Positions 11,121 to 62,168 of a stretch of DNA of 64,000 nucleotides are shown here, one piece after another. Source of the DNA: Fimbriosthenelais zetlandica (Eukaryota); assembly GCA_977030845.1 (NCBI GenBank), contig OZ365118.1, positions 2,976,001 to 3,040,000 of the forward strand, written 5' to 3'. The position numbers and the translations under genes were made by a program. How positions within the stretch are numbered: the stretch's first letter is position 1; the number at the start of each line of letters is the position of its first letter. The notes beneath the pieces were generated by a model, which searched no databases, was not told the DNA's origin, and saw only the letters and a list, made by a program, of their open reading frames with translations.

Positions 11121-11344
11121 CTCTCAATGATCACTGCACCCCGCACCGCCGGAAGTTCTATGATCGTGCGCCTGCGCTGTGAGCACACTAAAACCACCAG
11201 GTGACACACCATGTGACAAGGCTCGCGAGTTACTCAACGAGCATATATACCCGTGCCTGGTGAAGTGAACTGACCTGAGGATTATATAATCCTGGTGAAG
11301 AGAATCCGAGGTTGCTTGATGCCAACTGGATTACCTGAAGGAAA
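11121..11344 (+). other. 5' UTR portion of the large exon
   Basis: Strong acceptor TCTTTTCTTTCTCATTACAG| at 11101-11120, 224 nt upstream of the ATG. Confidence 0.7.
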
Positions 11345-14086
11345 ATGTCTCAAATGTGTTGGAGCGTTGCCCTGCTGGCGCTGGCGTTAGCAGTGCTCGA
11401 CTATAGTGGAGTAAGAGTGAAGGCAGATGAAGAAGCGAGGACTATCAGATATAGAGTGATCGAGGAAGAAGACCCTGGTACATTTGTTGGTAATGTCCGA
11501 CACGATGCCAGGGTGGATGATAGGTATGATCGATTTGTAGTCAGCCAAGTGAGGTTCAGACTCATGTCTCAACCTGAATGGACTTTTGTTTTAGAAGAAG
11601 AGACAGGAATTATAAGGACAGGAGATAGGATAGACAGGGATCGTACCTGTCCTCAGAAACTTGACTGTGCCATCTCTCTCGATGTTGTTGTTATCATCTC
11701 TGAGGGGTCGAGGTTCCTGGAGATCATCAAAGTGCTCGTGGAGATTATAGATACAAACGATAACAAGCCACGATTTGACGAGGTTCAGATCCGTAAACAG
11801 ATCCTCGAGTCAGCTATTCCAGGAACCGGACTGGTCATCCCCACTGCGATAGATCCCGACAGTGGCGCTAATGGTATCCAGAGGTACGAGCTCATCTCCA
11901 GTGACAGGACCTTCCGTCTGGATGTCGAGGAGAAGCTGGACGGATCCACTAAAGTCCTGCTCGTCCTTCAGGGCCGACTGGATCGTGAACAACAAGACTT
12001 TTACGAGATGAAAGTCGTAGCGCATGACGGGGGCATGCCGCCCCAGTCGGGATCCGTGGAGATCTTTGTGACCGTTCAGGATGCTAATGATAACAGTCCT
12101 ATATTTAATAACGCCACCTATGAGTTTATTGTGTTTGAGAATGTCGCTGTAGGCACGAATATAGGCAGAGTTCGCGCTACAGACAAAGACGCTGGTGCTA
12201 ATGGCCAGATTTTATATAGTTTATCAGGACAAACCCAGGCCATTCATGGGAAAACATTCGGTATTAGAAACAGTACTGGGGATATTTATGTAAGGGGTGA
12301 GGTTGACTATGAAGAACACCCCATATATACACTATCAGTGACCGCTAGAGACAGGGGCGCTGATTCCCTTCCTGTAGATGCCACAGTGGTCATCCGGGTA
12401 CTGGACATCAATGACCACGCCCCCATTATTAAGGTCAACACCCTGGAGGCTATAGGGGTGGACCAGGCTGAGGTTGATGAGGACGCTGATCTTGAAACCT
12501 TTGTAGCCCATATCACAGTGACCGACCCTGACAAAGATAGGAATGGCCGGTTCAACTGTTCATTGAATGACAATCATTTTAAACTTCAGCGACTCTATGA
12601 GAGTGAGTATAAGATTGTCACCCGGGCCTTGCTGGACCGGGAGATCCGGTCAGATTATAACCTGGCTATTAAATGTGTGGATTTTGGAGAGGTTCCTCAG
12701 GTCGCCATCAAACACATTAAGGTGATAGTGCGGGATATGAACGATAACGTACCCATCTTTGACAAGGATGTGTACACATCAAGTCTCATAGAGAACAACT
12801 ACATGGGTATCTTCCTGGTTCAGGTGAATGCCACTGACCGGGACGAGGGAAGGAACTCAGATATACGCTACAGCCTGGATCGAGACGCCGGGGACTATTT
12901 CCAGGTAGATCCCGTCTCTGGTAGCATCACCGCTAGAGCTGTATTTGACAGAGAACACACTCAACAACTGAGCTTCCACGTGATCGCCTCAGATCGTGGC
13001 CAGCCCAAGAAGAAGAGCAGAGCCCAAGTGATTGTCACTATTAACGATGTGAATGATGAGCGACCTGAATTCTCAGCACCCACGTATTCATTTGGTGTTT
13101 ATGAGAACGAACCCGCGGGGACCGAGGTGGGTTTTGTTCATGCTGTAGACACTGACAGCACGCCTTATAATGCATTTGAGTTCTCATTCGCTCCTGATCG
13201 TAGCGCCATGAGTAAGTTCGAGATCGACGCCCATACGGGTCGAATTATCACCAAATCCGAGCTGGACAGAGAGGAGCAAGCTGTGTATTACATAGTAGTG
13301 GTGGCTAAAGATGGAGGAGTCCCTCCCATGAGTAGCACAGCCACGGTGTCAGTGTATGTGTCCGATAAAAATGACAACCCTCCCGTGTTTGATTTCCCGT
13401 CAGAATTCAATAACACTATTCACATATCAAATAAGTCCCCACTGGGCTATATCATCACCAAGGTCCAGGCTTACGACCGGGACTACGGGAGGAATGGTAA
13501 CCTTACCTATACCATAGTCACCGGTAACGAAGCTCAGACATTCAGAATGGATCCCTCATCCGGGACTATCGCTGTGAATAAGGAACTCACAGAAATTCAT
13601 TTCTTTTTATACCAGTTGTCCATACAAGTGTCCGACAATGGGACGCCGCCTAAAAGTGTCAGCACCAACTTGAACATTATGGTGAACAAATCTATAGCTT
13701 TCCCAGTAGCTGAGCCACATATATTGACTGGACATAACTTCACAATAGTCATCACTCTGGCTTGTGTGTCGGGCGTGGTGGTTGTCATACTTATCATCGC
13801 CATTATTTGTATTAGAAAGCAAGACATGGAGAGGCGACATCATAAATATAATTGTCGTATGGAGGCGCTGAAAATGCTGCACTCCCGAGAAGTGCCCAAA
13901 GACTCTGACGATTCCTGCTCCGGGAAGGGAGTAGGCATGCACAATAGTAACTGCTCCTCAGGCGATGAAAAAGATAAACCGAGGAAGGAAGTCAGTTTTA
14001 ATCTAGAGTGTGAAGAAGATAAATATGGTTCACCCGAGAAATCACACCGATCATGGCCTTCTACCATTGACCACAGAACGCTGGAG
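11345..14086 (+). CDS. Pcdh: Protocadherin (delta-like, 7 EC repeats), large first coding exon: signal peptide, EC1-EC7, TM helix, proximal cytoplasmic tail (914 codons)
   Basis: 968-aa ORF 11345..14251. Hydrophobic N-terminal signal (MSQMCWSVALLALALAVLD). Seven cadherin repeats with Ca-binding motifs (DRD/DRE/DYE, DxD, DxNDNxPxF linkers DTNDNKPRF, DANDNSPIF, DINDHAPII, DMNDNVPIF, DVNDERPEF, DKNDNPPVF). EC1 has C-X5-C (CPQKLDC, 11648-11668), typical of protocadherins. TM FTIVITLACVSGVVVVILIIAIICI at 13739-13813. Whole ectodomain in one exon. Strong phase-0 donor CTGGAG|GTGAGT at 14086/14087. In-frame TGA at 11336-11338 fixes the start. Symbol is family-level only. Confidence 0.96.
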
Positions 14087-14251
14087 GTGAGTGAAGATAA
14101 AACTCACCTTGTTTTTTTATACTATGATCATATCCCCCAGGATTACCACCACCAACATCAAAATCAACATCAAAATCAACATCAAAATCATCATCATCAT
14201 CACAACAACCATCACCCAACACCACCACCTCCACCTCCACCTACAATCTAA
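14087..14251 (+). CDS. In-frame read-through extension of the large exon (54 aa His/Gln/Asn- and Pro-rich tail); possible short-isoform C-terminus
   Basis: ORF stays open past the donor: VSEDKTHLVFLYYDHIPQDYHHQHQNQHQNQHQNHHHHHNNHHPTPPPPPPPTI*. AATAAA at 14650-14655. Confidence 0.45.
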   Translation: MSEDKTHLVFLYYDHIPQDYHHQHQNQHQNQHQNHHHHHNNHHPTPPPPPPPTI

Positions 14252-17200
14252 GTCACAATACATTACAACAAGGCCCTGCACTGATCATAGCTCTAAGCTC
14301 TCTAGCTCTTAAGACGTTCCCTTGTTGTTGTTACGTTCAAGTTCAAGTTGTGTTAAGACGTTTACTTTTGTCACGGACAAAAAACTAATTTATCCCAAAC
14401 TCGTATGTAAGACATACAGATACTTTAAGCATATTAATGACAGTCACTCTGTGTTCACCCTGTGGATTTAAATGGCTAAAACATAGCACCATATCTAACC
14501 AAGACAGTTGTCCAGTGACATTAGTGTTGTCTCTAGCGTGTGCTAAGTTTTCACTAGATTTAAGTGCTTTTTCCCCTCCGCCGCTCACAAAGTGAGCAAT
14601 CGTCTGTCGCTGTTGTGCGGATCGTGTGTGCAATTAATTTAATTTTGTAAATAAATTATCGAAATGTGGAGATATTTCTACAAAACCTTGCTTGTGTACC
14701 CTTCCCTATGGGTTTCTTCCATGAGAGATTTCCAGATAAAACGGGTTAAGTTTTGAAGGTGAGGATTTGGAACTAACACTATTTTTAAGATGCTAAAACT
14801 AAGAATAGAAAATGAAAGCTTCCCATGATAATTATAGGCTTAAGTAGACAAAACTTGAAGGTATACATTACTTAGTATTGTTATTAACGCCCATCTCTCC
14901 TTTGATCTGTAAATACCCATTTTCTCTAGCCTTTAAGTGTGCTATTTTCCCCTTTAAAACCCTGCCTTGGTAAAAAGGCCGGACAAACGCGCTAATGATT
15001 GATACTAGTAAAACATCTGCGCCATTTTGACTCTCCCCTCCCTCCTCATCCATTGTCTGACATCATGCCCATTGTCTTCACAGAACCCACAAAAAAACAT
15101 ATACCCATAACAAATTATGGTAATTAGGGGCAGGGTCAGGTAGCCTGCAAATGGCCAATTAACACCTGAAACTCATCAGCTATTGATGAAAAGCATGTCA
15201 TTGTATGGAGCTATATTATAATTAACGTGGGCTTATAGATTAAAGCATCTATTTATGATGTACCATCTGATATGATGGATAGTAGTAGTGCCACCCACCT
15301 CAAATATATTATATATTGATAATATAATATAACCATATATGGAGGTAAGCTAGTCCATTGAGTATAGATATATGATCCCACAACATCGAGTTTAATCCCT
15401 CCATTATTCATTTAAATCTAAGCTTAAAGCTTAACGTAAATTGTAGTCCTTTGACAATACATTATTGTCCCATGACCTATTCTTTATTCCCTTACTAAGA
15501 AAACTTATATATGTACAATATTGGAAAATCGTAAAATTTGATAGCATTTTTAATAATTTGGCTCAGGTTTCCATGATAGGCTGTAGTAGTGAACATTTGG
15601 CATCTCAGTTGTCCTTGTTCCCCATGGCTGGTTTGCATGTAATGGTAGATAATTCACTGGATTATAGGCTAGATTATACAGGTCTGACTGGGGGTGGATT
15701 TAGACAATAATCTTGACCCTGTATGAGCAGTTATGAGCAGGTCTGAGTGACAAACATTGAGTTAATTACAGTTCCATGTAAGACCTTCATTAGATGAGGA
15801 GTGAGATGGGTGTGAGCTGGCTTCACCTCGGGTGACAAAACGCCTCATTCACTTTGAAACTTCACCCACAATCTGATCATCACCGAAACAGATCGTCTTT
15901 CAAACGTCATCCTAGGAGGGAGAAGCCATCTAACTTGATCCAATCTTATTGGACAGGCTTCCTGAACTTTCCCTAAAATGATTAAACGGGAGGAAAGTTA
16001 TTGATCTTTTTGATATGATCATTTCAATCTTGATCTCAGAAGTTGAGTCTCATTTGCCTTTTAGAGCTTGTGATCTCAAATTTCTTTGCATTTAACCCTC
16101 GAATTTAACCCCTCGTCTCCAAAATTTTCTAAATTTTGAACAAACTTTCCCTAACCCCTCAATTCAGTACCCATTCGGATCGTGTTTATGTTTTTTCAGT
16201 CACATTTAACACCACTATAGATCCTCCTTGGTCTTAGACCCCCGTGTTTTTTCACCGCGCACCCTTCCCCCTTCATGTGCTGGTTTGTTTAGACTCTGGT
16301 CTGGTATTACCTGTCATTGTTTACATCACTGATTATATGTATGATGGTGGACACATGTGGACCAGATGAGCCTGACATGCTAAAACAAAGGCCAACATGG
16401 CCGCGCTGTGCGGCAAGTACGGGAATAGCAGGGAAGGTGTCTCTACTAGAGACTCCCATAGACAAACCAACTGTGACACCCCCAGAAAATAAAGCGGCAC
16501 TTCCTAGGACAGCTGCCCTTTTAAAATTAAACCTATTATCTTTCCTTGGTCTATTTTCCAATGTTACTTCCTGTCAAGGAAGAGTAAGATCAGACAATTG
16601 TATGATTAAAGTCCATAACCAGTTTTGTTCAAACACAAAAAGAACATCATTCACAGCTCTATTTTAATAAGTTGAAACGAGTGAAAAAAGTGAACAATAT
16701 ATTCACAGGAGTGAATCTGTATGTGTCAAATGACACAGTAATGTCATGAAGCGTCACTTTTCTCACTTTGACTTTTGTCCATTTTAACGTTGCCTTTATA
16801 TACATATGGTGCATTCTCAGCCTGACAAAGGACATCTGAGACCCACCCATACAATGGTTATTGTTTTATAGCTCTCAAGTCCAGAATAAATACTGTGTTA
16901 TATATATAGATGCAACATTTACACTTCACTCTCCCATTCCCACCAAGTTTTGGGAAACTATTGCATCAAAAGAACCTGTCTTTGCTCACTTGTTGACTGT
17001 TTCAATGGGTGAAAGTCTCGGTTTAATTTGTAAATAGATTAAGATATTGAGAGCATGTTGGGAATGACTGAGCATTCAGGTCGGGACCTTTCATCCTATA
17101 TCTCTATAGGGATTAGTCAAGAACCGCTGGTCGCTTAATGGTCATCAAGTTTCCTACTCTTAAGTGCAACTATTCCCTCACAAATAGTGATTACATAATA

Positions 17201-19195
17201 TCAAATCCCCCATTCACTTCATCCTTAGATCATTGCGTCATCCGACAAAGTTAATACCCCATCATTGGAAAACAAATAAGTTCATGGTAAGCCCATCCGT
17301 CTTTGAAACCCAAGTTGAGTGGTTGCTTTAGTTCTGGACTTGTGAATGTTCAGAAGTTGAAGATATGGATCCGGAGCAAATGGGTCTAGTGAGGACAGGG
17401 TTAAATGATGCAGGGTGACTGTAAGGGGTTATATGGACCATGTTAACTCGTCTATAAAGGGTTATGACATGGCAGGTAACGAGGAGAGAGCTGGTGGAGG
17501 AAACCAGATAGTCAATGACGGCATCAATGGTAGCATAAACCCTCTCTCCTCCCTCATTATACATCTACTCTACCAGATGTAATAGACCTTATAGCAGTCA
17601 TTCCCACCAGCCCTATCATCCCCTGCTTCCCGTCCCACCAACCAGCCTGTAAATATTTGATATAATTCATCAAAGATCGCGCGGCATTGTCCTCCACATC
17701 CTCCCATGTTAGATTTATATATCACACCCTCCTCCTAAATCTACCCCCTCTTGAATTTCACCGGGGAAAGTGATTATATAAACTGATGTATTAAATGACA
17801 CTTGTTGATTTTCCATGTTAAAAATGTTCCCATTGAGAATGCTTTATTGTAATGCACTCTCCCAGAGTTGACCTATGGGGAATGAATCTGTCTGGGTGGT
17901 CTTGGCTTTTGGGTATATTAGCTGCATGTATTCATGTATCCCTGCAGGCCGCCTATACAAATCCCTAAACTCAGAGGCATTAAAACATGGCAGTCCTCCC
18001 TGGACCCGACCTTTGTTAAGTCCCCTGCTTTAACTCTCAAGTTAATTAAGAACTCTTAAAGGTCTGCTAAGTGTGAAGGGCCCCAGGCACCCCTCCATCT
18101 CTTCACTCTAAAGTCTTTAATTTCTAGGGAATTCAATCTATTAAATTTGACTTTGAATGTGATTTATACCTGAGGATGCCCATATGGTAGACTATTCCCA
18201 GCGAGATAAACCAATAGCATAGAAATCCGACAAGTACCTCATATGATGGGCCCTCTAATTGAAATATAATGTACATTCAAAAATCCCGAGTGAGTATTCA
18301 CCTGATTTTAGTGACAGGCCCATATTTCAGATATGGGGTAATGATGATGGTAATTTGGGTAATGGGGGTCTATTATGAGCGCTTCCTATCTCACATATTA
18401 TGCTCTTATATTCAATGAAATAGCTCCCTTCATTTTATACACACTCCCAACTGTCGCTATATGGTTGTGAATTATCAGATGGAGCGACCTCATATAGCTC
18501 TATACTTCCCACATTAATGTATTGTTCACCTTGGCTATTAAGGGTTGAGAGGGCCTACAATAGGTCCATGACGTAAGGGGCAGGCCCCCCCCCTTTAGGG
18601 TCTTTTGTATTAAAGGTTTGGGATTTAAGTTGCAGGGAACAGGTGGGAGACTGAAGTATAGAGATTCCACCACTCTGACCACCTTATTAAATACAGGTGT
18701 TGAGTTTATAAACAAGCCACCTGTTGAAAACAACAATGGATTCCAATACTATACCTCCACCAGTTTATACAATCAGCCCTTACCTAGTCATTTGAATATG
18801 ATGCAATCAAGCCTCTATTTGCTTCCCTGCTCCAACATTCAATATAGATCCAATTTGGCGGAGTGCTACATGGTTGAATTAAGATTGATTCTTGTAATTA
18901 AATAACCGAGTTTTGTTAGTTCTGGTGGAGCCGTGACCATGAAATGGGTGCTCATTGATGGACGAGAGATTTAAATAAAATCCACTCAGCACCGGGAATG
19001 GTATTAAACATCGGCCTTCTATATAGATTAATCCATGTTCATTGCATGTTTCAAACTATCACTTCCCCTGAAAAGATACGGGAGAACCACGCCCATCCAA
19101 ACCAACTACCATTATAAAACTGCCCTCCCAACCTCCATGCGAGAATATCTCCCAATTTAGGAATTAATTACATTTAAAATTAACCCTTAGCTAGT

Positions 19196-19235
19196 GACCA
19201 TGCGGCAGACCATGCGGCAGACCATGCGGCAGACC
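19196..19235. repeat. 12-bp tandem repeat x3
   Basis: GACCATGCGGCA x3. Confidence 0.9.
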
Positions 19236-22200
19236 CTCCCATACCACACACAACCTTCACACATATGCCGGCCTCACGAAGGCCAGGTGATTTAATTAGC
19301 AGGTAACTATGGCAACCTGTACATCTTAGATTGCCGCATCAGTATGGGCTCCATGCTTGGTTTCCATGACAATTGGCGGAGCCGGGCCTAATTAGACGGC
19401 AGGTAAGTGGCCCTGATTAGAAGGCTGTTGGGAGGTGGGGAGAGATGGTTGATTGTTCCTATCTAATCCTGTTATATGCCTGGCTCATTCTATTGTTGTG
19501 GGCCGCAGAGAGAGTCAGGTGATGGGAATACTCCACATACCTATACTTAATGCCTACCTGTACACTCCCTTCCTACTCCCTTCTACCCTCCCTTCCCTCC
19601 CTCATTTGAAATTTAGATTTTGTGTTGTATCCATGTTTCACAAATATCTTCATCACTAGAACCCCCAGTCTCACTCCTCCCATAAGCAGTCACATTTCTT
19701 ATTTCAATTTATTTATTACCCTATTGCACATATATTTTGATGGTCTTAGAAAAACATAATTGGCGTAGTTGTCCACTTATCAGCACCTTCCTAGGAAATA
19801 ACATGTCAAGTCTTGGCAGCTGGCAACCTTCTCAGAAAACAAACTACAGAAAAAAATCTTTAAAAAATATTCTGTCATGTGGTGGTCTTCCAACAGTGCC
19901 TTCCCACAATGTCCAGTGTTCTCACTCCCAGGCTGTTTTTAGCTTCACCAGACCTGTGGACACTTTTATTTCCCAATTCCTATACATTTACCCAATGGTT
20001 CAATCCCTGTACCTTTTGTCCTGGGTATGTACAATAGTTTAAGATGGGTTTGGTGCTCGAGGATATCAGGAAATGATGGGTTAAAGCTGCAGGTGGTAGG
20101 CTACCAATGAAAGCCCAAGATGGCAGTGAGGGGTAACCAAATATATACTGATCTAGGAACTTAAAATATTATAACATCAGGTATATTTTTAGTTATTTTC
20201 CTGGTGAAAATGATATATCTTGATAAACTACATACAAATGTCCCCTTCATAAAATGCTATTTGTCTACACCGGTAGTTCAAGAGAGATAAATGGCCTTTT
20301 CTCCAAAAAATTGATGTCCCCCTGAAGCATTAAGTTAAGGAGTGAACATACTTCATTTTGGAAAAGTAAACACAAGTGAACTCCATAGGTAGGGGAATGA
20401 GTTAGGTGTAGGGGAGGGGGGGGGGAGAGGCCTGGAGGCCTGCAAGCCAAAGGTGTGATGTCGGCCGTCTTCAAAGCCTATACGGGTTCAGCAAAAGGCA
20501 ATAGCTCACCTTAGTCATTCCCTTCTAATTAAGGAAGGTAAAGGTGGGCTGTAGGCCGTGAAAGCTGTATATTAATACTCACAATTATGGTAGAAACATG
20601 ACACCTCGGTGCAGATTGAATGTGTGTTTTGTAGGTCTGCATGTAGGCTAAGTGTAATTACTATTCACCTATCCACAACCTGTGATATATGTCTTAAGTT
20701 TGACATAGTTTTACATGTTGTAAAATTTGAGAAATTGGACTGATTTATGGCATGAAACATTGGAAAGGCTTCATATTTCCCTACCTTATTTGATTTGTTT
20801 ATTGGCCAACCAATTGGCTAAATAAAAATCTGAGATAAGAATTTAAAAATTGATAGTTTACAAATTGCCCATGATATTTTACAATATCCAAGTGAAATTC
20901 AATATTTGTAATATCCAGAAGTAGCCAAGTTCAATATTTCCAATAGTGTGGCCAAGTGGAACTAGCATATCTCGCACCATAAATACCTGCCAAGAAAAGT
21001 TGAACTTATTAAAACTGTAGATAAATGAGCATAGCTTCCCCTCCCCTCTCTACCCCCCGCTCTCCACCCTCTCCCTGCCCTCGACCATTAGTAAACCACA
21101 CCTGATCGCACTCAACCTGTCTATCTTCCTCTCGGATCTAAGAAAGTATTTTTTCCTGACATGTCTCTGACAGATTGGAGTATGGTCAGACAAATAGTTG
21201 GCTGGTCAGTGATGGTAATCTCCCACCATACCTGTACAGGTGTCTCATAACTTGACCCCGAGGTCAACTGGCCCTTAAGCGCTTCTACCGTACATAGGGC
21301 ATTACTGAAGTGGCTAGCCCCACTATAATAGTCCAACCCTGACCCTTCTGTTTGGCCTTGGATATAAGGTATCCCACAACATCACTCTTGTCTCTTTCAA
21401 TCACAAGTCCAGTGTCATCCTTGCATAAAGTTTGCCCTCCTCTGAACAATGGGCATTGATATATAAATGTGAAAGGGAATTAGAAGTGATCCTAGAATGG
21501 CAGCTTAACTATTAATACATTTATTCTTAAGCCCTATAAGGAATATATTTGAGAAGTTGAATAATCATTTCAATATTTAAACTGGGCCTGATTCAAATCA
21601 AATATTTAGTTTGATATGAAGCTTAGGGTATAATCCTGTGGCCTGATCTTTCCTGTGTATAGTGGCTCCACCTAGTAGACTAGCGTGAAACCAATATCCC
21701 TATATGGGACCAACAGTTGATCAACTTGATGGGACAAGTTGATGGGACTTGATAAAGGCCCTTCTAACTATTAAATGCTCAAACTATTTTATAATTTACT
21801 AGTATGAAAACAAGAGTAACTAATCCCGAAGTAAAATATATTATGGATAAGCTAATAGTCTTTCAAATAATGATAGAAATGCTGACCAATTTCCCCCCCC
21901 CCCCCCATGGACCTGTGGTGTACTCCCCTCTCCTTGACCAGTAACGGAGGCTAAATGCCAGTTCAATTTTCTAAAGATGACCAGCTGCGAAGAAAAATAA
22001 TTTAACAGGTTCATCCATGCGTCCTTTACACCTCTATTTATCACTCCCTGTCTCCTCCTCGCTTCATAACCTTACGATGACTGGGCCTGCCAGTACCACC
22101 CCCCTACCCCAGGTGTCGCGGCGGTCGGTGGTACTGGCACGCTGACTCCCTCTAGTGGAACTAAGTGGAGTTTATGTGAGCGGCTGTAAGCCTGGTAAAG

Positions 22201-28200: not shown

Positions 28201-28240
28201 GAGAATGGCGGTGCTTGCCTACAGTGTATGTATGTGTGTA

Positions 28241-28312
28241 TGTGTCAATATGTCTAACATATGTATGATATATACATGTGTCAATATGTCTAACATATGT
28301 ATGATATATACA
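28241..28312. repeat. 36-bp tandem duplication in a TA/TG-rich patch
   Basis: TGTGTCAATATGTCTAACATATGTATGATATATACA x2. Confidence 0.9.
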
Positions 28313-46170: not shown

Positions 46171-46453
46171 ATAATACCCGCAAACTACCCCCAGTCCCTC
46201 CCAATACCCACAAACTACCCCCAGTCCCTCCCAATACCCACAAACTACCCCCAGTCCCTCCCAATACCCACAAACTACCCCCAGTCCCTCCCAATACCCG
46301 CAAACTACCCCCAGTCCCTCCCAATACCCACAAACTACCCCCAGTCCCTCCCAATACCCGCAAATTACCCCCAGTCCCTCCCAATACCCACAAACTACCC
46401 CCAGTCCCTCCCAATACCCACAAACTACCCCCAGTCCCTCCCAATACCCACAA
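46171..46453. repeat. 30-bp minisatellite, 9 full copies plus a partial
   Basis: CCAATACCC(A/G)CAAACTACCCCCAGTCCCTC, near-identical copies, no spacers. Confidence 0.96.
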
Positions 46454-46884
46454 CCCTTCCTGGTGGGCCCTGCCATCCAGCAGATGCACAAAAATCCAGT
46501 GTTGGGACCACATTGACCTACCAACCATGATTACTTCCCATTGCCTCAGTATCTGATTTTTAATATGAACTTTTACTATAAAGTGCCGTGGAACATATTC
46601 ATCAGCACTCCATTATCATCTAATGGGCCTCGAGGGAAGCCTAGATGCTTTATACAAGCTCCTAGTTACCGGAGAAGAATATTAATATCCCTGTGGGCTT
46701 GGTATTAGTTTTCTGTGTTGGATTAATATTGTTGGAACCCTTTGGTTGCTTAATATCAATGGCACAAGGCTCCGCTTTCACATGGGTCTTAGATATAATG
46801 GGGTTTAAGCCAGGATCAGTAAGTGATAGCTTTAGAGAAATAAAGCTGGAATATTTAATCTGGAATGTTCGATACCTTGCATGG

Positions 46885-46967
46885 TGATTATATTTATGTA
46901 GCTGTAATTATATTTATATAGATATGATTATATTTATATAGATATGATTATATTTATATAGCTGTAA
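46885..46967. repeat. 20-bp AT-rich tandem repeat x4
   Basis: GATTATATTTATATAGATAT and variants. Confidence 0.85.
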
Positions 46968-49829: not shown

Positions 49830-50100
49830 TCTCCCCATCTCTCCCTTTTCTCTCTCTTTCTATATATCTATCTGTTCTCTATCTTTCTTCTCTCTCCCTT
49901 CTCTATCTCTCTTCTCTATCTCTCTTCTCTATCTCTCTTCTCTCCCTTCTTTTCTCTCTTCTCTTTCTCTATCTCTTCTATCTCTATCTCTTCTATCTCT
50001 CTCTCCTATGTCCATTCATATGGTCACTTATTCCGCCTCTACCTCATCCCTCCCTCCCTCTATCCCTTTCCCTCCCCCCCCCCCCCTCCCTCTCTCCCAC
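49830..50100. repeat. Polypyrimidine (CT/CTAT)-type low-complexity tract
   Basis: About 200-270 nt of CTCTATCTCTTCT-like sequence ending in C runs. Confidence 0.9.
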
Positions 50101-52013
50101 CCAGTCTCTGTGATATAAGAGTTTAGAGGAGCTAGTCCCTGGTCTCATCAGGCAGCATATATAGCCCGAGCTGCTCCGAGCTTATACCAACCCGCCCTAT
50201 CCCCTCACCTCTCACTATCACCCACACAAAACACCCACAATCAATACCTTAGATAATTAATTAATCAACCCCATTCTTATATCTGTCCTCGCTTCTATTG
50301 CTCTAAAAAACACCCAATGGTAATTTCTGTACAGGCGAAAAGCAATGAAGAACATTTATGGCAAGGAGGGAATCTCTGTCAGCTACTGGGGCTCGGGTGA
50401 AAGAGATGATATTTTTGGAGGGCAATTATGACTCTTTAAGTTCATTAACAGAAAAGTTATCCAATCCTTTGATGGATGAACTCGGGTTGAATAGTGACTG
50501 GTGATTTTTAATTGGTCATACGCCGCTAGATGGAGTGAAATCCCATAGATCTGCTCCCATTCATGCCTCATTTCTTTGATGAATCGGTTCAGCTGTGGAG
50601 ATGCGAGACTTTGGATGTGGTCCCACTACATTAGATATCGCTAGCATTTTTCAGCAACTTTCTAAACAAAAAAAACCCAGCGGTTAACCCTTCGACGAAT
50701 AGGCTGGTGAGCAATGGGAACATTTGCTCAGTCTAAGCCTAGCTGCTGGCTTTTTGTAGCTGGTGAATTTTTCATGTGGTTACACCAGAAGATTGAGCAA
50801 TGCTTCCACGAATACCAGCAGCAGCAGCCCGCCAACTGGGCTAGATTAGTGTAATTGCATTGGTGGTGAGAGGAAGGCAATGTGACAAAACGAGCCTCTA
50901 TCAATCCCATGTTGACCTACTAATTGCTGTAAGTGCTCATTACCATCACATGCTACCAAAGCTCGCCTCGTAATTTTTTGCTTGTCCCTCATAAATAATA
51001 CTCACCACAAATCAAATCTAGACTTGCCTACCAGCGTGACATACATTAGAAGCCCAGTGGGGGAAGTATGGAAGCCAGATCCTAAAACAAGCCACTGATT
51101 AAAGCTAATAGACCGCTATCCCACATAATGGCTTCATATCTTATAAATGCAGGTTCCATTATTGCCACGACATACCATTCCTCGTCTATTTCCTGTAGGA
51201 CGACTCTTTTATTGGGTATCTCCAGCTTATACTTTACTGAAGGAGATCTAACCCTACACTCCCCATCTCCTATAGCCGGGTCAGGTGTCAGCCATGATAA
51301 CCTCTCCCTTATCACAACCAGCCCACTTTATCACAGATTTCTTTTGCTGCTTTCCTCTCAAGTTGCAGCGAAGAAAATAGTCGGGTATGGAGGAGCATTG
51401 CTTCTCCTATTGCGGCCCCTTTCTGCCACTGATAACCTAACACCCAGGCCTGCATGTCAACTAACACCAACAATTTACTGCTCAAGTTGGCTGTATAAAG
51501 TGAGCATGCGGAGGCCCGGGCCACCCGATCCCCCCACAAATGGTGGCCGCATAAAAAGCAATGGCACCACATGGAACATGAAAGTAAGATGGAAATGGAT
51601 TTATTTCCCCCCTTTCTCTGGAGAAGGCCTCGTGCCGTCGAGTGGCCAGCTAGGGTTCTATTGTCATTGGGGCTGAGATATAAAGGTAGGGTTCCCCGTG
51701 CTGGGGGAGGCCCGCCCCAGCTGGGCATTGTTGGTGATGTTGTTGGTGTTGGATGTTGCTCCCCTACTCTTCTTCTGGGTTGTGCTTTCACATCTGAAAC
51801 CATTTCCATTTAAAATAAAATTGCCCTTGAGTGTTCTATACATATGGGTTTTTGTTATCTGCAGATCTTGCACCATATCCTTTAGCCTTATGTTCACTGG
51901 GCCATTTTCTTGACAGTCATGACTTCGCCCTGTCAATTGCCCATTAGCATACTGGCTTTAACTACCTTTAGGTCATGGTGACGTGAAGTCATGGTGACTT
52001 GAGGTCATTGTGT

Positions 52014-52192
52014 GTTAGAGTAGAGAGCAGCTAAGTGAAGCAGTATTGTTTTTGTGAGTATTGGTCAGTGTGGGTTAGAGTAGAGAGCAGCTAAGTGAAG
52101 CAGTATTGTTTTTGTGAGTATTGGTCAGTGTGGGTTAGAGTAGAGAGCAGCTAAGTGAAGCAGTATTGTTTTTGTGAGTATTGGTCAGTGTG
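52014..52192. repeat. 60-bp exact tandem repeat x3
   Basis: GTTAGAGTAGAGAGCAGCTAAGTGAAGCAGTATTGTTTTTGTGAGTATTGGTCAGTGTGG x3, identical. Confidence 0.96.
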
Positions 52193-52530
52193 ATAGTGGA
52201 TGGAGGGTGGGTGAGGGATGAGTCTGAGATAGCCACTCCCTGACCAGGACACCTTACTGTGAGGTTATCCATCATGTCCCCCTATCATCCTCTCTCTAAC
52301 CCCACTCTCACCATCCATCTTTATAATCTATTATAGACACCCTCCATCCCTCCACTACCACATGGTCGCCATCAACTCAAAAACCCCCAATATTAAATAT
52401 AATAGAGAATAGTGAATGGTTAACTAATATAATTATCAGGGTATTCGGTTTACCACTGGTCTGAGAGTGCCCCCCCCCCTTCCTGACCCTCCCGTCTTAA
52501 ACAATTCATCATCTTGGATCGCCTGCCTTG

Positions 52531-52589
52531 GTTGCCATGGAAACAAAGTCACCAAAGGTGCATACAGCAACAGGCCGGATCCGGAAGTG
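52531..52589. promoter_or_regulatory. RFX X-box plus ETS site cluster
   Basis: GTTGCCATGGAAAC (52531-52544) fits the X-box consensus; CCGGAAGTG (52581-52589) fits the ETS consensus. Motif match only. Confidence 0.45.
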
Positions 52590-55500
52590 GAGCAGAGACA
52601 TAGATGTGTCGTCTGAGGTCCGGGAGCGAGGCTGTCCTGAAAGGATGGGGCTTTAAAGGAACAAAACGTGGCCACATAATCAATTAAAGTGGTAGAGAAA
52701 AGAGTTAGCTTTTCCTCTTCCTACAATCATCAATATCATTACTCTCTAGAGCTAATACTAGGAGTAGCTCTCGAGCTAAAGGTGAAGAACTGAGCTATAT
52801 TGCTCATATTGGCTTATGGGAAATGGAGGAATGTTGTGTACATCTGAAAAGATCCATCTGTCCTTTCAATCCATTGTTTCAGTCCCATCTATATTGCTGC
52901 CATCTCATGAGAAGATTGTATAAATTATGTGAAGTTGGTTTAGCAAATGTTGCTGTACCATTGGTGATGACTGCTCCAGGTCTCACATACTGTGAATAGG
53001 TCGACGGTAAGGAGGTTCAGTATAGAGTAAATATATGTGTCTGTAAGCATGCCTTCCTCTCCTATAGACGCCCTATAGTGAGGACACTGTTGCTGCTGCA
53101 GGCCCGACCAGGGGCCCAAGTGATGGCCACTGTAATGGGGCAGGACATTAGATAGGCTACAAGGCCAGTCACTCACACCTGTGTCAAAGACATGCCAATT
53201 CTGGTCACTCAACCAACCTAAAGAATGAATATCCCCTGCTATCTATAGGCAGGGCATTGGATCAGTAGAAAGGCCGGCCAATTTTCGAGGCCATGTTCTC
53301 CGGGCAATCTCTACATTGGCTTCACCAGTCAGGCCAGCAAAGACCTATAGGCCTAGACTATCAGCTCCCCCAAACGTCAAATAACACGGCCATTTTTTTT
53401 CCTGGAAAATAAGCTGAGCAAATATTTTTGTGCAACTCTCCTTGAAGAATTTGCTATTAAACCATCCAACCATCTCGCTTGATAAAACACACTACATTAG
53501 CAAAACCCAAAATGCCCGATTCCTTATATGATCTATATGATTACAAATTGCCTCAAGAAGTTAACCCCTATATGCCACTTGTACTTTGAACTCCAAGTCT
53601 TTCCATGTCTATTCCGTAAGACATTCAATCAACATTGCCAATGTAATGCTCACGTTTACCTCCCTGCATCAACACTTTTTTCACTAAGGATTCTCAGCCA
53701 CTTCCTGGCTGCAGGGGTAGTTCCCTTTAACTGGAGAATCTATATGTCTGAGGAAATAAGACAGGGTAATCCCTCCTGGAGCCAGCAGGCCTAACGTAGA
53801 AAGTCATAGCTGATCGTTACTAGTCTGATTAGCGTGTTGTTTGGGAGGACAAATTTCCACAAACCTTTACTGTGTCTTTCCTCTTTCTCAAACTCACGCC
53901 CCATCAACTTGATTATCTGTTTTACTCCTCCTCAAGTAAGGAAGCAATCTTTCAGGGGGAACCCACCCATTCGTGATGTATAAAGGATTTGCCCAAGCTT
54001 GCCTCGCAGTCACCAATCTTTTCTAAAACCTACAGCCACAGTACTAAACAAAAAACCCGGGATATGTTTTTATTTTCGGTTGTTAGAATCGACGGTTGGT
54101 AAGAAGTGCCAGCGCATCTTCACTCTCCATAGAGCACACACGATATCTCCAGCTTTTCTCCCCAAGTAAACTTTACCATTTTCTCCTCCCTTGCTCATTT
54201 TGTCTAAAGAAGGCATAAATATTTACTTCCCAGGCAGCAAACTTGTGCCATACTTCCACAAGTAGTTTCCTCTCCCGGACCCAGAAGTGGATATTCCTGG
54301 TACGTTGGTGGATGAGGGGATAATAAAGAAAGGCATAAGGAGAGGTGGAAGTGGAGGGAAGGTGTTGGGAGGAGGGGGATATTTTCCACCAGACCCATTC
54401 TGCCTGTTTAGTATAGGATTAGGTGTGGCTAACTTTGGACAATGTGGAGATGAACAAAACTCCCAGCGTCTGCTCCCCAGACCCTTCTAAATCATCTCAC
54501 AGCTTATATGCAGTCTAAGGCATCCTCAGGAAGAGTCAATAGATGTGTTTAATTATATGGGTTATGTGGGAACCCACAGCCAATCTAATAGACTATCCTT
54601 CAAGCTCAGCAAGATTGAGGAGCAATGGTCTCTTTTTCTATTAAAAATTTGATGTGCAGTTCATCCATTTGCGAGACAAACTAGAAATGAACACCGCATC
54701 TTGACACATCCATTTTTATTATCGCTGTATAGTTGTTGGCCAAGTTTAAACAATGTTCTGCCCCCCTCCACCGCCTCCTCCAGTCCAATGTTCCTGCCTA
54801 TATAGAGAGAGACTGAGCATTATACCAGATGACACAAGATAGATACCAGTGAGAAAGATTGATTAGAATGTAGCTGTCCCCGTCAGTCTGCCTCCTTTCT
54901 CTATCCTTATCATCCGATGTTGGCGGGCTAAATGTTGCCATCTAGGAGCCCTGCCTATAAGCTTTTGTCTTGTACCAATGCCCCACGAGGTCCCCAACAA
55001 TGGGACTGATTAATATGACAAAGGTCACAGGACCTTGTCAGAATTAATTGGGTCAAAGGTCATCAAGACTCGGCAAATGGAACATGGGAATGGCTCCACG
55101 CGGACGGAGCTTCTTTGGTGTGATAAGCCTATACGTATTCACCGAGGAGTATATTTATTCATCTCCTCCAACCAAGCAGCACTCCGACATGAGAAAGCCT
55201 CATAGGGGAGCAGAACTCATTGTTATATTTATTGTCTCAGCAGAACAGACACGGCTGCTCTTGTAATTCAAAGCGCCATTGTTTTTCATTATTCTCTCCC
55301 CTCTTTGAAATCTCCCTCTTTGCTGCCTGTTTCAGCTTGATAGGTTTCTTTGTGACTGTCTTCCAGCTCACAGGAGAACTTTTAGAGGGAAACAAATATC
55401 AGAGATAGAAACATCGGCTGGTCGTAGTCTCCGGTGATTGGAATCTTTTTATTTGTCGGACCTCTGGGAGGAGAGGGTGGGGGCGAGCAGGACAATCCGT

Positions 55501-56707
55501 GTCCCGGCCGGGGTACGGATTGTATGACAGGCTCCAGATAAATGCATATCTGAAGTTGAAGATAAGGCATCATCCTTATTCTCTGATAAAAGATGACTTG
55601 TGTTTCTCAATGGAAGCAGCTTGTGGGAGGAGAAAGTGGAGGAGTTAGAGACATTGGTGGTCTGATAGGAGGAAGGCTGGATACTGCAGTGGTCTCCGCT
55701 CTCACTCCCAAACACAAGACCTGTTTAATCTGCACACAAACAGGCACAAAGATTAGTATGATCGATGCTGGTAGGGAGGGGAAAGAGAAGAGGAAAAAAC
55801 GGGGTGTAGGAAGGAGGGCGAGGCCGTATTGTCTCAGCATTGTGATGCTATCTCCACCTGGCTTGTAATGTTCATCTGATAACAACCAGGGCAAAGAAAC
55901 AATTCATAAGATCTATCTCGATAGGAAATAAATGGATGCCACACAGTTACTAGGCCCCCGCTTTACAGAAATTCAATTGAAGTCTCTTTCCTAGTACAAA
56001 GTGACTGTTGAATGAAGGATCCAGGGTCGCCGTGCCTGATGGGGCATCTAGAACATCTCCCACACACTCTGCTAATGATAACCTCCACGGGCTCGGAATT
56101 AGATTTGAATTCCAAGAGAAACTTTTGGTCTTTGACACCTCTTTGAAATTTGATATGTGATGGAACCTTCCCCTGTGACAAAGGTACGAATACAAATGAT
56201 AAAATCCACAGTTTCTTTGTCTGATTTTGATCCTGGGAGTGCCATTTGTTAAGGCAATAGTAATACACTAACGGTTCTATTGCCATCATAAATAAACCCA
56301 ATGTAACAGTCCATCACTGGGAATGGGACATTTGTTTTACCTTCACTTCTATTTCCCGACCTTTTTTTCCGATTTTATTCATTAATAAATAAGCATAGCA
56401 GTGTAAAGATGTCCAGATTTGATGGGGTGATATTTTTTTCTCACGGTAATTGAAAAGTCCATGAAATACCTCACGAAACAAACATCCATGGAGATATTTC
56501 TCAGCCGGAGACAACAGGCGTTGGGATGTAATTAATAGTTCCCCCTGAGCCTTCAGATTCCTGTGGAATTTGACGTATCTTTCCATCAGATCGCATCCAT
56601 TTTAATATTCAACTCAAATAAATTTGCATGCACAAGTTCTTCTCTGGATTTCCCCGGGGGGTTGATTGATGGTGCGCCTAGTTGTTATAGAGGAAGTGTC
56701 TCCACCA

Positions 56708-56762
56708 CTCCCAGCCTCCTCCCAGCCTCCTCCCAGCCTCCTCCCAGCCTCCTCCCAGCCTC
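56708..56762. repeat. 11-bp tandem repeat x5
   Basis: CTCCCAGCCTC x5. Confidence 0.92.
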
Positions 56763-59700
56763 CCCCCGCCATCCAGTTATTAACGGACTAATCCCTGGGT
56801 GGCCATGTTGGACCTGGGCCGGATGTTGCGTCACAGCCTATTGGTTGTACATGTTGTGGAAGGAGGTCGTGCTTGAGACAGCCATGCTATTGTAAATAAG
56901 ACTTTCTGATCCAATCCCTCCACTGTCAATATGACAGCGTGAGCTAGGCTATCCTCCACAGATAATTAATCTCCTATCCGATGACACCCCCCAATTGCCT
57001 TTTGTAGATCCAATGACCATCGTTTGAATTGCTCCAGTCTCTCCCTTGCCATTCTCCCCACATCACGGACTCGGACTACCTCCTGAATGACCCTGCCAGT
57101 TGGTCATTTTGATGAGTCCACCTGTAGCCTTGTCATTGGAAGCCCCCCCCCCCAAAAAAAAAAATAAAAAAATTCCGGACCAAAATTCACACAATTCCTG
57201 ATTTTCCTCAGAAAATATAGAGCTTGAAGGAAGTAGATTGTTTGATGGTGAAAGAATAAGATCTGGTAACATGACAGAATGGTAAATTATGGATATCACA
57301 GTGACAGGACGATCCTGTCGCGGGCCAATTATGTGGCTCTACCTTTGACCCCACTCTACCCAGATACAAATTGCATCTCCACAAATCACTGTCAATACAT
57401 TTGGGTCAAGCTTTTCCCGTGGAGAGCCCTCCACCCCTACATGCCGGCTGACTGGAGCATGATTGAGCAACAGGAGAATTGCTCTTTTCTTGAGGAGCTT
57501 TCAATGGCCGGGAGAGAGGAGGTAATTTTCTGCTCTGCCACCTTCGTCATAACCGTTTTAGATGGCAGACTTCATGTCCCATTCGTCAAGTCTCTAGAAG
57601 GCACGATGCTCGAGGCTGCGGTCTCTGAGCCACCTCCTTCACACCTTCCCTACACATTAAATATTGAAATGTTTAAGATTAAAGCATGAGGTATATTAAT
57701 ATAAAGGACCCCCTCCTTCTCTTAACAGACGCTGACCTTGATAAAGATGCTTTTCTCCTGGTAAAGGTGTGTTTTTATGGGATGTTATTAATGAGTAGCC
57801 TCGGTAATGAAGCATCTTTTAGGGGCCTTTCAATGAGGCATCTTAAAGACTATAGTGACGCCATGCCTGCTCTGATCCATTCATGCCATTATGAGGCGAT
57901 AGTCGAGGCCCACTACCGACAACACACTCATTTGCCTGGGAAAGCTTTTAACAGCGACCTCCCTCCCTCTCCCTCCCTCTCCCCCTCCCCCCCGCCTTCA
58001 CTGGTATATGTAAGCTTATGTATAAAGTTTCACATGAAGTCTCCAAAGGATGTGACTTATAAAAACTGGGTATAAAATGTATTGTATAAGAGGAGAGGCA
58101 CATTAATGAATAGCGTCTTCTTTGCTGTGTTAAATACAATGACACCTGATTCTCAGAGTCGGCTTTATTTCAATTTGTACAACATAAAATGTGAGTCTAA
58201 CAGGTAGAAATGCTCGCATTGTAGATCCTGCTGAGATGAATTTTAATTTCAAATACAGTATAAATACTTGACAGTTCTTGTATTACTGAGAAGCATAAGG
58301 AAGTAATGAAGTATAAGGAAACAATGAAGTAACTTAAGGAAAATAGTTCTGACTAATCCCATACTTGACAGTGATACAAATAATGCTTAGAAGCTATTAA
58401 TGTGGCATTGTTAAAGGCCATATAATGCATGGTTACCCATCTGACATAGCTGTGGTGATGTAGAATGAATTGTTACTTGTCAACTCTGGACTTTCATCAT
58501 TGGATCAATGTCAGATCTCATGTCATATTATCTCCTAATCAACCCCAGTGGACATCTCTCATTGTAACTCTGTTACATTACATAATCCACCTGTTTATAC
58601 ATCCAATCAGTCATATTACCAGCCAGCATTGACTCTCACTGCACTGGGTGGCTTTATTACGTAATATTACATCATGTAATACTCTCACATTCCCCCATTA
58701 AGCTTTAAGGGTGTTGGAGACCAGCTGGTGAGCTTGTACTATAGCTGTAGCTGGCTTACCCACCAAGTATGGCATGTTCTGGTAGCACCCACTTATCCCG
58801 GCTAATCCCGCTTATGGCTTACTTACATGCAGCTTATATACCATACATCATGCTGGGAACCCATATCCTTCCTAATCATTTTGGAAACCCTTAAGGCTGA
58901 ATACTTACCCAATCCTTTAATGCTCAGAAAAGTGAATATATTTGAATTCTAATCCTCTTTATGCAAAATTGCTTAGGCTTTCACAGCCCACCTTTGCCCT
59001 TTAGGAATAATCAAATAGCAGTAATGTAGGTAAGCGGGGTAAATCAGCTGAGATAACTTTGTACACTGACAGTAATTTGTGAGGGAATGTGTGCATGTGG
59101 TACCAGCTCATGTGAAGGTGATGGCATCGAGGGTCAGTAGCTTCAGTAATTCTGTCATTACGACTTCAACGTGAAGCCTTGGTTTGAAGCGCCTTGGCAG
59201 TTGACTGGGGCCTGAGAATGGACCCAGGTAGGCCTAAATGGTGGCAGATTTATTACTTATTCTGACGGGTTGACGAGAGTGGCTCATTCATTATATGACA
59301 TATGAAGGGATGTGATTTACTCCCACCGACTCCTCCACACACTCCGATGATTCTATAAGCTCTCTCTCTGGTGAAATGTGATAAAGTATTCACCAGGCTT
59401 CCCACCATGGCAAACACTGGAGTTAGAAGGAATGAGCCTCCTAGGTGTAGTACTGGGAATGACCGGCGGGAGGGGGTGGGGGGTGGGGGGGGGGGCGGGG
59501 AGGGGGGGGGGGAGCCGAGGGACAGCTGTGTGTAATATAAGTAGTCTAGTGGTCAAGGCCGACAGTGATGGCAAGGTGGACCTCCGCCTCAAAAAAACCT
59601 TGACACTTATTCCGACAAGAATCTAGTTTCAACCTCAGCTGTTTAAATCGTGCATACATCCTAAGCCTACTTTTGTAGGGGGATTCCACCATCCCTGAGG

Positions 59701-61940
59701 ATGGGATTTCTCCAGCTTTCCATTAGATATATAATAGAGAGGTGCTGCTCATTCACTGCCAGCCACCCCTTGCCTCTGAGAGTGGCGCCTGCCCTGTATT
59801 CAGACCCATCAAGTGATGATAATTAGCGATAAAAGCCCAGGCCCACACATAGGTTAGCTGCAGGAAGACCCGATGCAAGCATCGCATGCTAAACACTTAT
59901 CTCTCAGTGAATTGGGTCGTTTGCGATGCCATTTCCAGACATAAACAGGCTAATAGGACTAGTGATCCTTAGATTGGAAAGCCTGGGACATGGGAGAGAG
60001 ACTGGCACCATCCGGGATTCTATCCCTGCTTTAGATCCCAGTAATATCTACTGACGATTATAAAGACTAATATTGGTGGGCCTGATGAGAATCTATCCCC
60101 CTCCCGAGTCTATTTAGGATCTCCACTATGCTGGAGATCAAGCGGAGTCCGATATGTGAATGGCGGACATGGCTGACGTTTGGAACCCACTGAAATAGAC
60201 TGATGACTCTACTATAGGACGCTGGTGGCCATTTGAAATCCATTTGGTGATAAAATCTAATGTAATGCACTATGTTGGATTCCCGACCACACATTTGACA
60301 AGATTGTGGGCAGTGATTCCTAGTGGACTTTATCATATATGATGGCTTGTTATGGACCATTATCAATATTGAATATGCAATAAGTGCATGTTAAGGTAAT
60401 CCAATCAACTCATGGCTCATCCTAAATCTCACTCTGTTTTTCATATAAATGCCCCCCCCCCCCCCAAGCTGCACCGATTCACATAGTCATTGTTGAACTT
60501 GTTTGGTGCAAATCTGTGTACAATTCCATACAAATGCTTAACAATTACATATATAACTTTTGTTGTTTTGATCAAAAATCTAGATTTGAAAATGGGGATT
60601 TGTTCATATTGAAACATTTGGAAGTGTTTAATATCCGTCCCATAACCAGTGCATTTCATCTAATACAAATGTAATCAAGAATGTTCCAGTTGGCGATTGG
60701 CAATAATTTGAAAGTGATATTACCTTTAATAAAATAGAACTATCTGTTTCAATCTTATCTTCCCATTGTTTTGGACTAATCATCTCTGGGGGTGTGAATG
60801 ACCTGACGTCCCGTTTTTTTGCAATTTTCCTGTCTTCGCGTCCAATAAATCTCTTAAGTTTCTCTCCTTTTCAATGAGACTGTTGATTGCCTTCTCAAGA
60901 TCATCTAGCTTGTGAAGAAATTCTCCTATAAATGCACAATAAATGACAAAGTATATTGAAAGCGACTATATATATATGCATTCCTGTCTCCTGATAACAA
61001 ATGCCAACACAAAACTGTACAGGCGAAAACATTGTCATTTTACATGCAATGGATGAAGTTTAATCTGTTGAATTTGAGGACCATGAGTATGCTCTGATGT
61101 ATATTTTCTGCCATGATTTCCTCCATTGACTTGCATAAATGTGGCAAAAAATAACAAATTTTTGAAATTTCTAGAAGTTTAAAACTTATTTTGACTGTGG
61201 GTGGAGTAGCTGTTGGTAGGATCAGCTTAATTTGTTAAGAATATCACCTTACAGTGGTGGAGGTGTGGATTTGAACACATCTGGTAGGGAAACTCCACTC
61301 TACCTCACGCAACCCAGTGATATGCATCCACCTAGCCCTCTATCACACGTAATCTATGGATTAACTATAAGGCAGGGACTAATAACCTTGATCAAGGACA
61401 CCAATCCTACCTCCCCCTCTCATCTCTATACATGTTACAGTTATTAACAGGCCTTGGCTTGTTTAGATCCCGCCTCACAGATTGATTAATATGTCTGTTA
61501 ATAATCAATGTTTTACCTTCCCCCTCTCTGATGTAATGTACAGTCAAGATTAAGACCATGGCCTTTGCCATCCACCATCCTTATCCCCCTGGTATTATCC
61601 TAGATTTGCTTTATCGTTGTCTACGCAGATTAGAGCTTAAGTGCATGGGATATAAGAAAAAAATTAATTGCTCGCGCACATAAAAATGTCTCGTAGGATA
61701 TGGTTGCTGGGGGTCATGAAGATGTCTGTGCATTGAAGTATTACTTAAGATCATGTTCACGAGTTTGATTCAATTTGTGGAGGTGTCTGTAATAATAATA
61801 AATCAACTCAGCCTCTTTTTACATCGAGTCTCAGGACGTTTTGTTATGCCAGCCACGTCCATTAATTGCCGTCGTGTACCCGCTTTTCCTGAGGATTTAC
61901 CAACAATTAATCAGTTGTCTTTTTCTTTTATTAATTGCAG

Positions 61941-62168
61941 CATCCGCAAGCTTGCAGTTCGATGCTGAACCATACCCTTACCACTCCACCACCACCCCCA
62001 CCTCCTCCCTCGGGCCACCATCGGATGACGTCATCAAGCGGGGGATCACGTGAGCCACTACCAGCCTATCAGCTGCCCCCTGCTCCGCCGCCTCCTAGTG
62101 GCTTCAACCGTCAACAAAACGACGGAGGCGCAGGTCAAGCATGGGCGCTCACCCAGAGAGAATTAGAG
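61941..62168 (+). CDS. Pcdh: Probable second coding exon of the protocadherin: Pro-rich cytoplasmic segment (76 aa, HPQACSSMLNHTLTTPPPPPPPPSGHHR...LPAYQLPPAPPPPSG...LTQRELE)
   Basis: Acceptor TTTTTCTTTTATTAATTGCAG|CAT and donor TTAGAG|GTGAGT. Length 228 nt, phase 0 at both ends, in frame with the 14086 donor. GC/CpG-richer than flanks. The poly-Pro run uses mixed codons (CCA CCA CCA CCC CCA CCT CCT CCC), as expected for coding sequence. Linkage to the Pcdh exon is inferred from phase and content. Confidence 0.72.

Follow-up and report, generated by a model that had tools for sequence, protein, structure and literature searches.

In vertebrates, clustered protocadherins are made by splicing variable first exons to shared constant exons. 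The non-clustered genes are described as having 'large exons encoding multiple ectodomains' (Wu & Maniatis 2000, in the wording quoted by PMC7339444). Exon 1 of mouse Pcdh10 accounts for the ectodomain, the transmembrane (TM) helix and 138 residues of the tail, and long isoforms arise by splicing to small exons with conserved motifs (PMC9040349). Cephalopod protocadherin genes are multi-exonic whole-gene duplicates, almost all of them on one chromosome (Albertin et al. 2022, PMC9068888). In annelids, the Pcd11x protein of Platynereis dumerilii (UniProt A0A2H5BFB8; the name is a best-hit annotation) was assembled with Trinity from RNA-seq reads and also sequenced as a cDNA clone (Nakama et al. 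2017, PMC5725810). We analysed a 64,000-nt stretch of the annelid Fimbriosthenelais zetlandica, contig C37:2976001-3040000 of a 447-Mb assembly (hereafter the window, which contains no N). Its segment from 11121 to 62168 reads as the 5' two-thirds of one annelid protocadherin gene.

Exon structure of the gene

Two plus-strand open reading frames (ORFs) lie at the ends of this segment, 11345..14251 (968 aa) and 61935..62354 (139 aa). An earlier note had proposed that the two hide a single gene, split by a very long intron and continued by further exons past position 64000. The gene model is made up of the following features (window positions, unless given on the contig).

11121..11344, plus strand: putative 5' untranslated stretch of the large exon, recognized from sequence alone
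11345..14086, plus strand: coding part of exon 1, 2742 nt or 914 codons, ending in phase 0
14087..61940, plus strand: intron 1, 47,854 nt, GT...AG
61941..62168, plus strand: coding exon 2, 228 nt or 76 codons, phase 0 at both ends, proline-rich
62169..64000, plus strand: start of intron 2, which continues to C37:3044847 (6,679 nt in total)
C37:3044848-3044989, plus strand: exon 3, beyond the window, 142 nt, tttttttacag/GTCCAC ... CAG/gtcagt, ending in phase 1
C37:3066619-3067343, plus strand: exon 4, the last, beyond the window, 725 nt, ttttttacag/GG ... DDLFFRDMVV, then stop

The frame of exon 1 is uninterrupted up to a GAG/GTGAGT donor (ACGCTGGAG/gtgagtgaa). Exon 2 begins at 61941 after the acceptor ttttcttttattaattgcag/CATCCG, with an in-frame TAA two codons 5' of it, and ends at 62168 with GAATTAGAG/gtgagtact. 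Its donor is thus the same GTGAGT as that of exon 1, and its splice sites are equal in quality to those of the larger exon. The phase-0 donor at 14086, the exon at 61941-62168 with good acceptor and donor, and the 47,854-nt gap had all been given correctly in the earlier note. The exons expected past 64000 were found as well: a search of the assembly with the Pcd11x tail returned two matches on the same strand, at C37:3044842-3044958 (87% identity) and C37:3066756-3067340 (42%, reaching the C-terminus), and the corresponding exons 3 and 4 lie 4.8 kb and 26.6 kb past the window end. Joined together, the four exons give 3837 nt and 1278 aa with zero internal stops. The introns measure 47.9, 6.7 and 21.6 kb and the whole gene about 80 kb. 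At the other end, a candidate acceptor at 11121 (ttctcattacag/CTC) would imply at least one non-coding exon upstream; no DNA-level conservation of 11121..11344 was detected in the relatives compared by blastn.

The order of the segments was compared with that in transcript-derived annelid proteins. Exon 2 encodes HPQACSSML...AWALTQRELE and exon 3 VHQLLQMLK...DSGRGPSEEGE. Platynereis Pcd11x reads ...WPSTIDHKTLE / TPQACSSML...PWPLTQRELE / VHQLLQMLK..., and the protein P0020 reads ...TQNFQ / NPQACSSML...PWALTQRELE / VHQLLQMLK.... The two end peptides of exon 2 occur at the matching place in the transcript-derived annelid proteins P0003 and P0020. In a six-frame translation of the window, PQACSSML occurs once (61944) and LTQRELE once (62148), in the same frame and at the two ends of exon 2. 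Since both peptides are unique and share one frame, exon 2 is more than a chance open frame. Consistently, when the P0020 and P0003 tails were run against the window with tblastn, exon 2 was found (E 1e-6 and 2.5e-4), and with the tails of three orthologous or paralogous transcripts no further match was obtained inside intron 1.

Over their full length, residues 6-1278 of the joined model align with residues 7-1241 of Pcd11x at 51% identity, end to end, and residues 4-1278 align with P0020 residues 1-1226 at 45%. Every segment of Pcd11x has a counterpart in the joined model when the tails are aligned. The proposal that the 968-aa and 139-aa ORFs hide one gene is borne out by this colinearity with transcript-derived orthologues from end to end. 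A search with the Pcd11x tail region returned only Pcd11x itself and P0020. Exon 2 is single-copy in the assembly, both as DNA and as peptide, all other matches being proline-rich noise (E 0.016 or worse).

Two further observations come from genomic sequences of other annelids. Dozens of ORFs read through the donor at the identical place (...Q/E followed by V, as in ...TL[EQ]/V...), indicating that the end of exon 1 is conserved across annelids. In the relative with 80% identity, one contig carries both the exon-1 ORF and the last-exon ORF, oriented alike and separated by about 68 kb; the large size of the gene is therefore conserved, too.

Altogether, these data suggest that the pre-mRNA joins 14086 to 61941 and then the 142-nt and 725-nt exons, within one protocadherin gene; we put the probability of this at roughly 0.88. 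Splicing from GAG/GTGAGT at 14086 to the acceptor at 61941 would remove the 47,854 nt between them, and exon 2 would be joined to the 142-nt exon 6.7 kb further on and this one to the 725-nt last exon another 21.6 kb on. The predicted junctions are ACGCTGGAG/CATCCGCAA for exons 1 and 2 and GAATTAGAG/GTCCACCAG for exons 2 and 3. The product would be a single-pass membrane protein of 1278 aa, with seven cadherin repeats and a cytoplasmic tail of 455 aa.

Ectodomain, tail and protocadherin class

Exon 1 encodes a signal peptide, seven cadherin repeats, a TM helix (residues 799-823) and the first 91 or so cytoplasmic residues. Pfam searches identified Cadherin_2 (PF08266) at residues 33-116 (E 4e-18) and six stretches of PF00028 (E 1e-108); the product contains six D-x-N/D-D-x-x-P inter-repeat linkers, which make seven repeats. 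The features that define a protocadherin are thus present: a Cadherin_2-type first extracellular cadherin repeat (EC1) with tandem cadherin repeats (six to seven in total), a single TM helix with a tail that lacks the classical catenin-binding cadherin cytoplasmic domain, and the whole ectodomain and TM helix in one 2742-nt exon. By homology, the membrane-distal repeats would mediate homophilic calcium-dependent cell adhesion.

In a 5.8-billion protein collection, the nearest relatives of the exon 1 protein are two annelid genomic ORFs (85% and 80% identity), with Pcd11x at 56%; Ridgeia, Paralvinella and Capitella contribute further relatives. The solved protocadherin structures that match best are a PAPC-like EC1-6 (E 1e-118) and human PCDH10 EC1-6 (3e-107). 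When solved EC1-4 chains were scored, PCDH18 (277 bits), PCDH19 (262), gamma-A1 (251) and PCDH10 (245) came ahead of PCDH1 (189), which is the sole delta-1 member in the solved-structure set.

The likeness to Pcd11x extends throughout the protein. Both have seven cadherin repeats, the juxtamembrane HKYNCRMEALKML, KKEVSF and WPSTIDH(K/R)TLE, followed in the same order by PQACSSML...LTQRELE, VHQLLQMLK...DSGRGPSEEGE, a TF-containing motif, MQYSCADMS and SGSYVVDPQDLC.EIDDLFFRDMVV. The window gene differs in carrying two long polyproline runs in exon 2, where Platynereis has none, and is not a simple 1:1 orthologue of Pcd11x.

Comparison of four annelid tails revealed a series of conserved blocks. 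In exon 1 these are HKYNCRMEALKML next to the membrane, (K/R)KEVSF and WPS(T/L)ID; these are followed by both ends of exon 2 and VHQLLQMLK...SAYSG.GSN.DSGRG.S.EG, and then by NQ(V/I)VP, (M/L/F)(R/Q)TF(A/S), (M/V)QYS..DMS and S.SYVVDP..LC.EI...FF.DM.V. Each of the four tails contains a single RVxF-type match, KEVSF, and a single WIRS-type match, and both sit at positions that align across the tails. The second of these, a short pattern, reads MRTFAP, LQTFAP, LQTFSQ or FQTFAT at its one aligned position, and QMRTFAP is kept in the last exon of a relative. By our estimate about 0.8 WIRS-type matches are expected by chance in such a tail, so that only the aligned conservation counts. The candidate docking motif KEVSF adjoins the membrane in exon 1. 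Of the 20 paralogues, about nine have KKEV(S/T)F-like motifs in the part of the tail encoded by exon 1, if two weak variants are counted.

In vertebrate protocadherins, WIRS motifs such as FITFGK recruit the WAVE complex (PMC6047886; PMC7339444), and the RRVTF of delta-1 tails docks protein phosphatase 1 (PMC7339444). The annelid tail may likewise signal through short conserved motifs, with KEVSF as a possible protein phosphatase 1 dock and M-R-T-F-A-P of the last exon as a possible WIRS-type dock for the WAVE complex. The protein would then act as a receptor in homophilic adhesion, with phosphatase 1 and the WAVE complex recruited to its disordered tail. Larger units were not recognized: Pfam returned no family for the window tail and its orthologues at E up to 10, and a search of the ESM Atlas with the tail gave no usable match. 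The last exon, searched against 1.84 billion representatives, retrieved no vertebrate protocadherin and has only short lophotrochozoan relatives there; all 54 matches are short ORFs, and those with a name are mollusc proteins, apart from one spurious match.

The earlier note had likened the locus to the vertebrate PCDH7/9/11 type. The part of this comparison that concerns gene layout holds: as in vertebrate delta genes, one large exon encodes the ectodomain, the TM helix and the first 90-140 or so cytoplasmic residues, and small cytoplasmic exons follow after long introns, an arrangement also found in the paralogues. The likeness includes a putative WIRS-type tail motif and a possible short isoform formed by read-through of the exon-1 donor. 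The part that implied delta-1 membership is not supported. Delta-1 protocadherins (PCDH1/7/9/11) have seven cadherin repeats (PMC7339444), as has the window protein, but so does delta-0 (PCDH20). The tail, unlike that of vertebrate delta proteins, has neither the GHSD..CW string nor a Pfam tail family: a pattern search for GHSD, GH[ST]D.CW and CW in the tails of the joined model, P0003, P0020 and P0012 found none. The suggestion to look for CM1/CM2-like exons downstream was not borne out by these searches, exons 3 and 4 being without GHSD..CW and without a Pfam protocadherin-tail match. PCDH1 is outscored by delta-2 and gamma chains in the EC1-4 comparison above. The CM3 motif of delta-1 proteins, RRVTF, is located in the distal tail, whereas the RVxF-type motif of the window protein lies next to the membrane in exon 1. 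Delta-2 proteins (PCDH8/10/17/18/19) have six repeats, against seven here, and a WIRS motif (hydrophobic-x-T/S-F-x-x) in the tail, for which the aligned WIRS-type pattern described above is a candidate. 'PCDH7/9/11 type' would therefore best be understood as an analogy of gene layout and not as membership.

Isoforms and intron 1

Some observations weigh against the four-exon model. The exon-2 ORF, searched alone, found no homologue in the protein collection. In P0012, a siboglinid-like transcript, the sequence runs from ...QQTLQ directly to VHQLL, with no equivalent of exon 2. The window gene may also contain an extra species-specific micro-exon, or skip exon 2 predominantly. For the motif part, the RVxF and WIRS patterns are short.

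The most serious alternative is that exon 2 is a cassette that is mainly skipped, the dominant long mRNA joining 14086 to the VHQLL exon 54.8 kb downstream. Being 228 nt long with phase 0 at both ends, exon 2 could be left out without loss of frame; P0012 lacks the segment, the paralogues in the same genome have no detectable copy of it, and its middle is poorly conserved and of low complexity. Against this, two transcript-derived sequences, independent of each other and taken from different annelid lineages, contain exon 2; both of its ends show strong conservation, and its splice sites match those of exon 1 in quality. Moreover, P0012 sits in another clade of the family tree than the window gene, so that the missing segment may reflect a gene difference rather than alternative splicing. 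Predominant skipping is thus unlikely, although exon 2, which is frame-neutral, may be a cassette used in some transcripts only.

Somewhat less likely still, a substantial share of transcripts might ignore the donor at 14086 and read on to the stop at 14249-14251, producing a 968-aa short isoform without the distal exons.

14087..14251, plus strand: read-through extension of exon 1, 54 codons plus stop, possible short isoform

The frame is open for these 54 codons, and mouse Pcdh10 offers a vertebrate precedent, with a short isoform from an extended exon 1 (PMC9040349). The first 77 nt of intron 1 (14087-14163) align with one relative (L024/L025; protein ...KTHLVYLYYDHIPQDY...), the peptide KTHLV(F/Y)LYYDHIPQDY being common to both. 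The extension is not conserved in a second relative (L022) or in Platynereis-group ORFs, and is a His/Gln/Pro-rich, low-complexity sequence lying over a 12-nt microsatellite. A[AT]TAAA signals are found about 400 and 990 nt past the read-through stop, but such hexamers are common by chance. Aligning with one of two relatives, the 77-nt segment supports a short isoform weakly; it may represent the tail of a short isoform restricted to one lineage, or else an element that controls splicing.

Finally, it is very improbable that 61941-62168 is another gene's exon or a chance open frame in non-coding DNA: short, proline-rich and without a Pfam family or a protein-collection match of its own as it is, it has two exactly conserved peptides at its splice sites, which follow the exon-1 end motif and precede VHQLL in the same order and frame as in the mRNAs of Pcd11x and P0020; colinearity of the joined frame with Pcd11x extends over 1278 residues; and Pfam searches of the window ORFs gave no other gene signal nearby. 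In conclusion, we favour the four-exon gene, with exon 2 included.

Intron 1 was further inspected for other contents. None of the ORFs of at least 100 aa in the window, including all those in intron 1, had a Pfam match, and hence nothing points to a nested gene or to a transposon protein. Recursive-splice (ratchet) sites were considered and rejected, as one near-match was found against 4.7 expected by chance. The non-coding comparison covered about 20 kb of flank per relative, and about 10 kb of each relative's intron. These are the elements recognized in the intron.

24183..24216, plus strand: 34-bp conserved non-coding element with a AGATGATCAATATAATTGATCAATTTGTGAC core (blastn; colinear, 91% identity, single-copy in the genome)
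33019-33422, intron 1: C-rich 22/44-bp minisatellite (tandem-repeat scan)
46173-46453, intron 1: 30-bp minisatellite, 9.4 copies, 97% identity (tandem-repeat scan)
49700-50110, intron 1: TC-rich repeat, with a minisatellite at 49838-50005 (tandem-repeat scan)

The 34-bp element is the only non-exonic match between the window and the flank of the 80%-identity relative, whose neutral sites are otherwise saturated. It carries homeobox/Pbx-like half sites, and is a candidate regulatory element. The idea of intron 1 as a regulatory landscape thus relates to one 34-bp element in the roughly 10 kb compared. Copies or relatives of the three minisatellites (33019-33422, 46173-46453 and 49838-50005) are present at other places in the genome. 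For the 33019-33422 and 49700-50110 repeats, dozens of copies with 70-80% identity were seen, many in tandem arrays near the ends of other contigs, and the 46173-46453 minisatellite creates a spurious 134-aa ORF on the minus strand (SQYPQTTPSP repeats).

The gene family and what it means

The window gene belongs to a family confined, as far as scored, to contig C37 (23.8 Mb). At least 21 full-length ectodomain exons (the window gene and 20 paralogues) were found between 1.2 and 23.0 Mb, with none scored on the other 78 contigs; the figure is a lower bound, obtained by scoring 50 of 190 candidates and retaining those above 500 bits against the window exon 1. Downstream of the large exon, on the same strand and at a distance of 11-72 kb, at least 10 of the 20 paralogues have an exon of the VHQLL type. 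The large-exon, giant-intron layout therefore characterizes the family and is not special to this locus.

The region 2.987-3.067 Mb contains one cadherin exon only, and the nearest paralogues are on the opposite strand with VHQLL exons of their own. The window gene resembles clustered protocadherins in having a large first exon with ectodomain, TM helix and proximal tail, followed by three small downstream exons. Tandem variable first exons with shared constant exons are not found at 2.987-3.067 Mb, and since no other cadherin exon lies inside the gene, the arrangement is not of the clustered, shared-constant-exon kind. Each paralogue having its own VHQLL-type exon on its own strand, the family consists of whole-gene duplicates.

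In a quick maximum-likelihood tree, for which SH-aLRT values are the only supports, the window gene groups with two orthologues from close species (100). This group is sister to clades of the neighbouring paralogues at 3.15 and 3.27 Mb (97), and these together are sister to the clade containing Pcd11x (95), which puts the window gene in the Pcd11x group. One neighbouring paralogue (L026, C37:3145228-3149019, minus strand) has a large ORF terminating in about eight tandem copies of ...TPIPSPPPPPQ/VGENTHNLYTPP; the repeat takes in the end of exon 1 together with the splice donor. As a separate observation, the called genes L022 and L023 (ena:ERZ26168297:contig_356) contain stops under table 11; the caller evidently read through them, and collection 'proteins' of this sort are unreliable.

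Whole-gene duplication is shared with the cephalopod genes, as is the position of all 21 scored copies on a single contig, C37; the difference lies in numbers and density, some 21 genes over 22 Mb here against 168-288 in dense cephalopod arrays (PMC9068888). From the confinement to one chromosome in both groups, the linkage may be ancestral in Spiralia. A broader scheme can be imagined, as a whole tentative and rather doubtful: a cassette exon 2 would insert a polyproline module, bound by SH3 or EVH1 domains, between a membrane-proximal phosphatase-1 dock and a distal WAVE dock, the 48-kb intron would be kept long by regulatory elements such as the homeobox-like 24183-24216, and both the layout and the confinement to one chromosome would descend from a spiralian ancestor shared with cephalopods.

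The gene is an ordinary annelid non-clustered protocadherin with the classic large-exon layout; the kind is already known, the member is new. The main value of the analysis lies in correct annotation, because ORF tracks and ORF-based protein collections truncate such genes at the first donor, missing 364 tail residues that are spread over 77 kb. The conserved short motifs of the tail provide testable hypotheses for invertebrate protocadherin signalling. Finally, the layout of vertebrate non-clustered protocadherins is present in an annelid, across the whole family of about 21 genes, which supports an old bilaterian origin of this layout.

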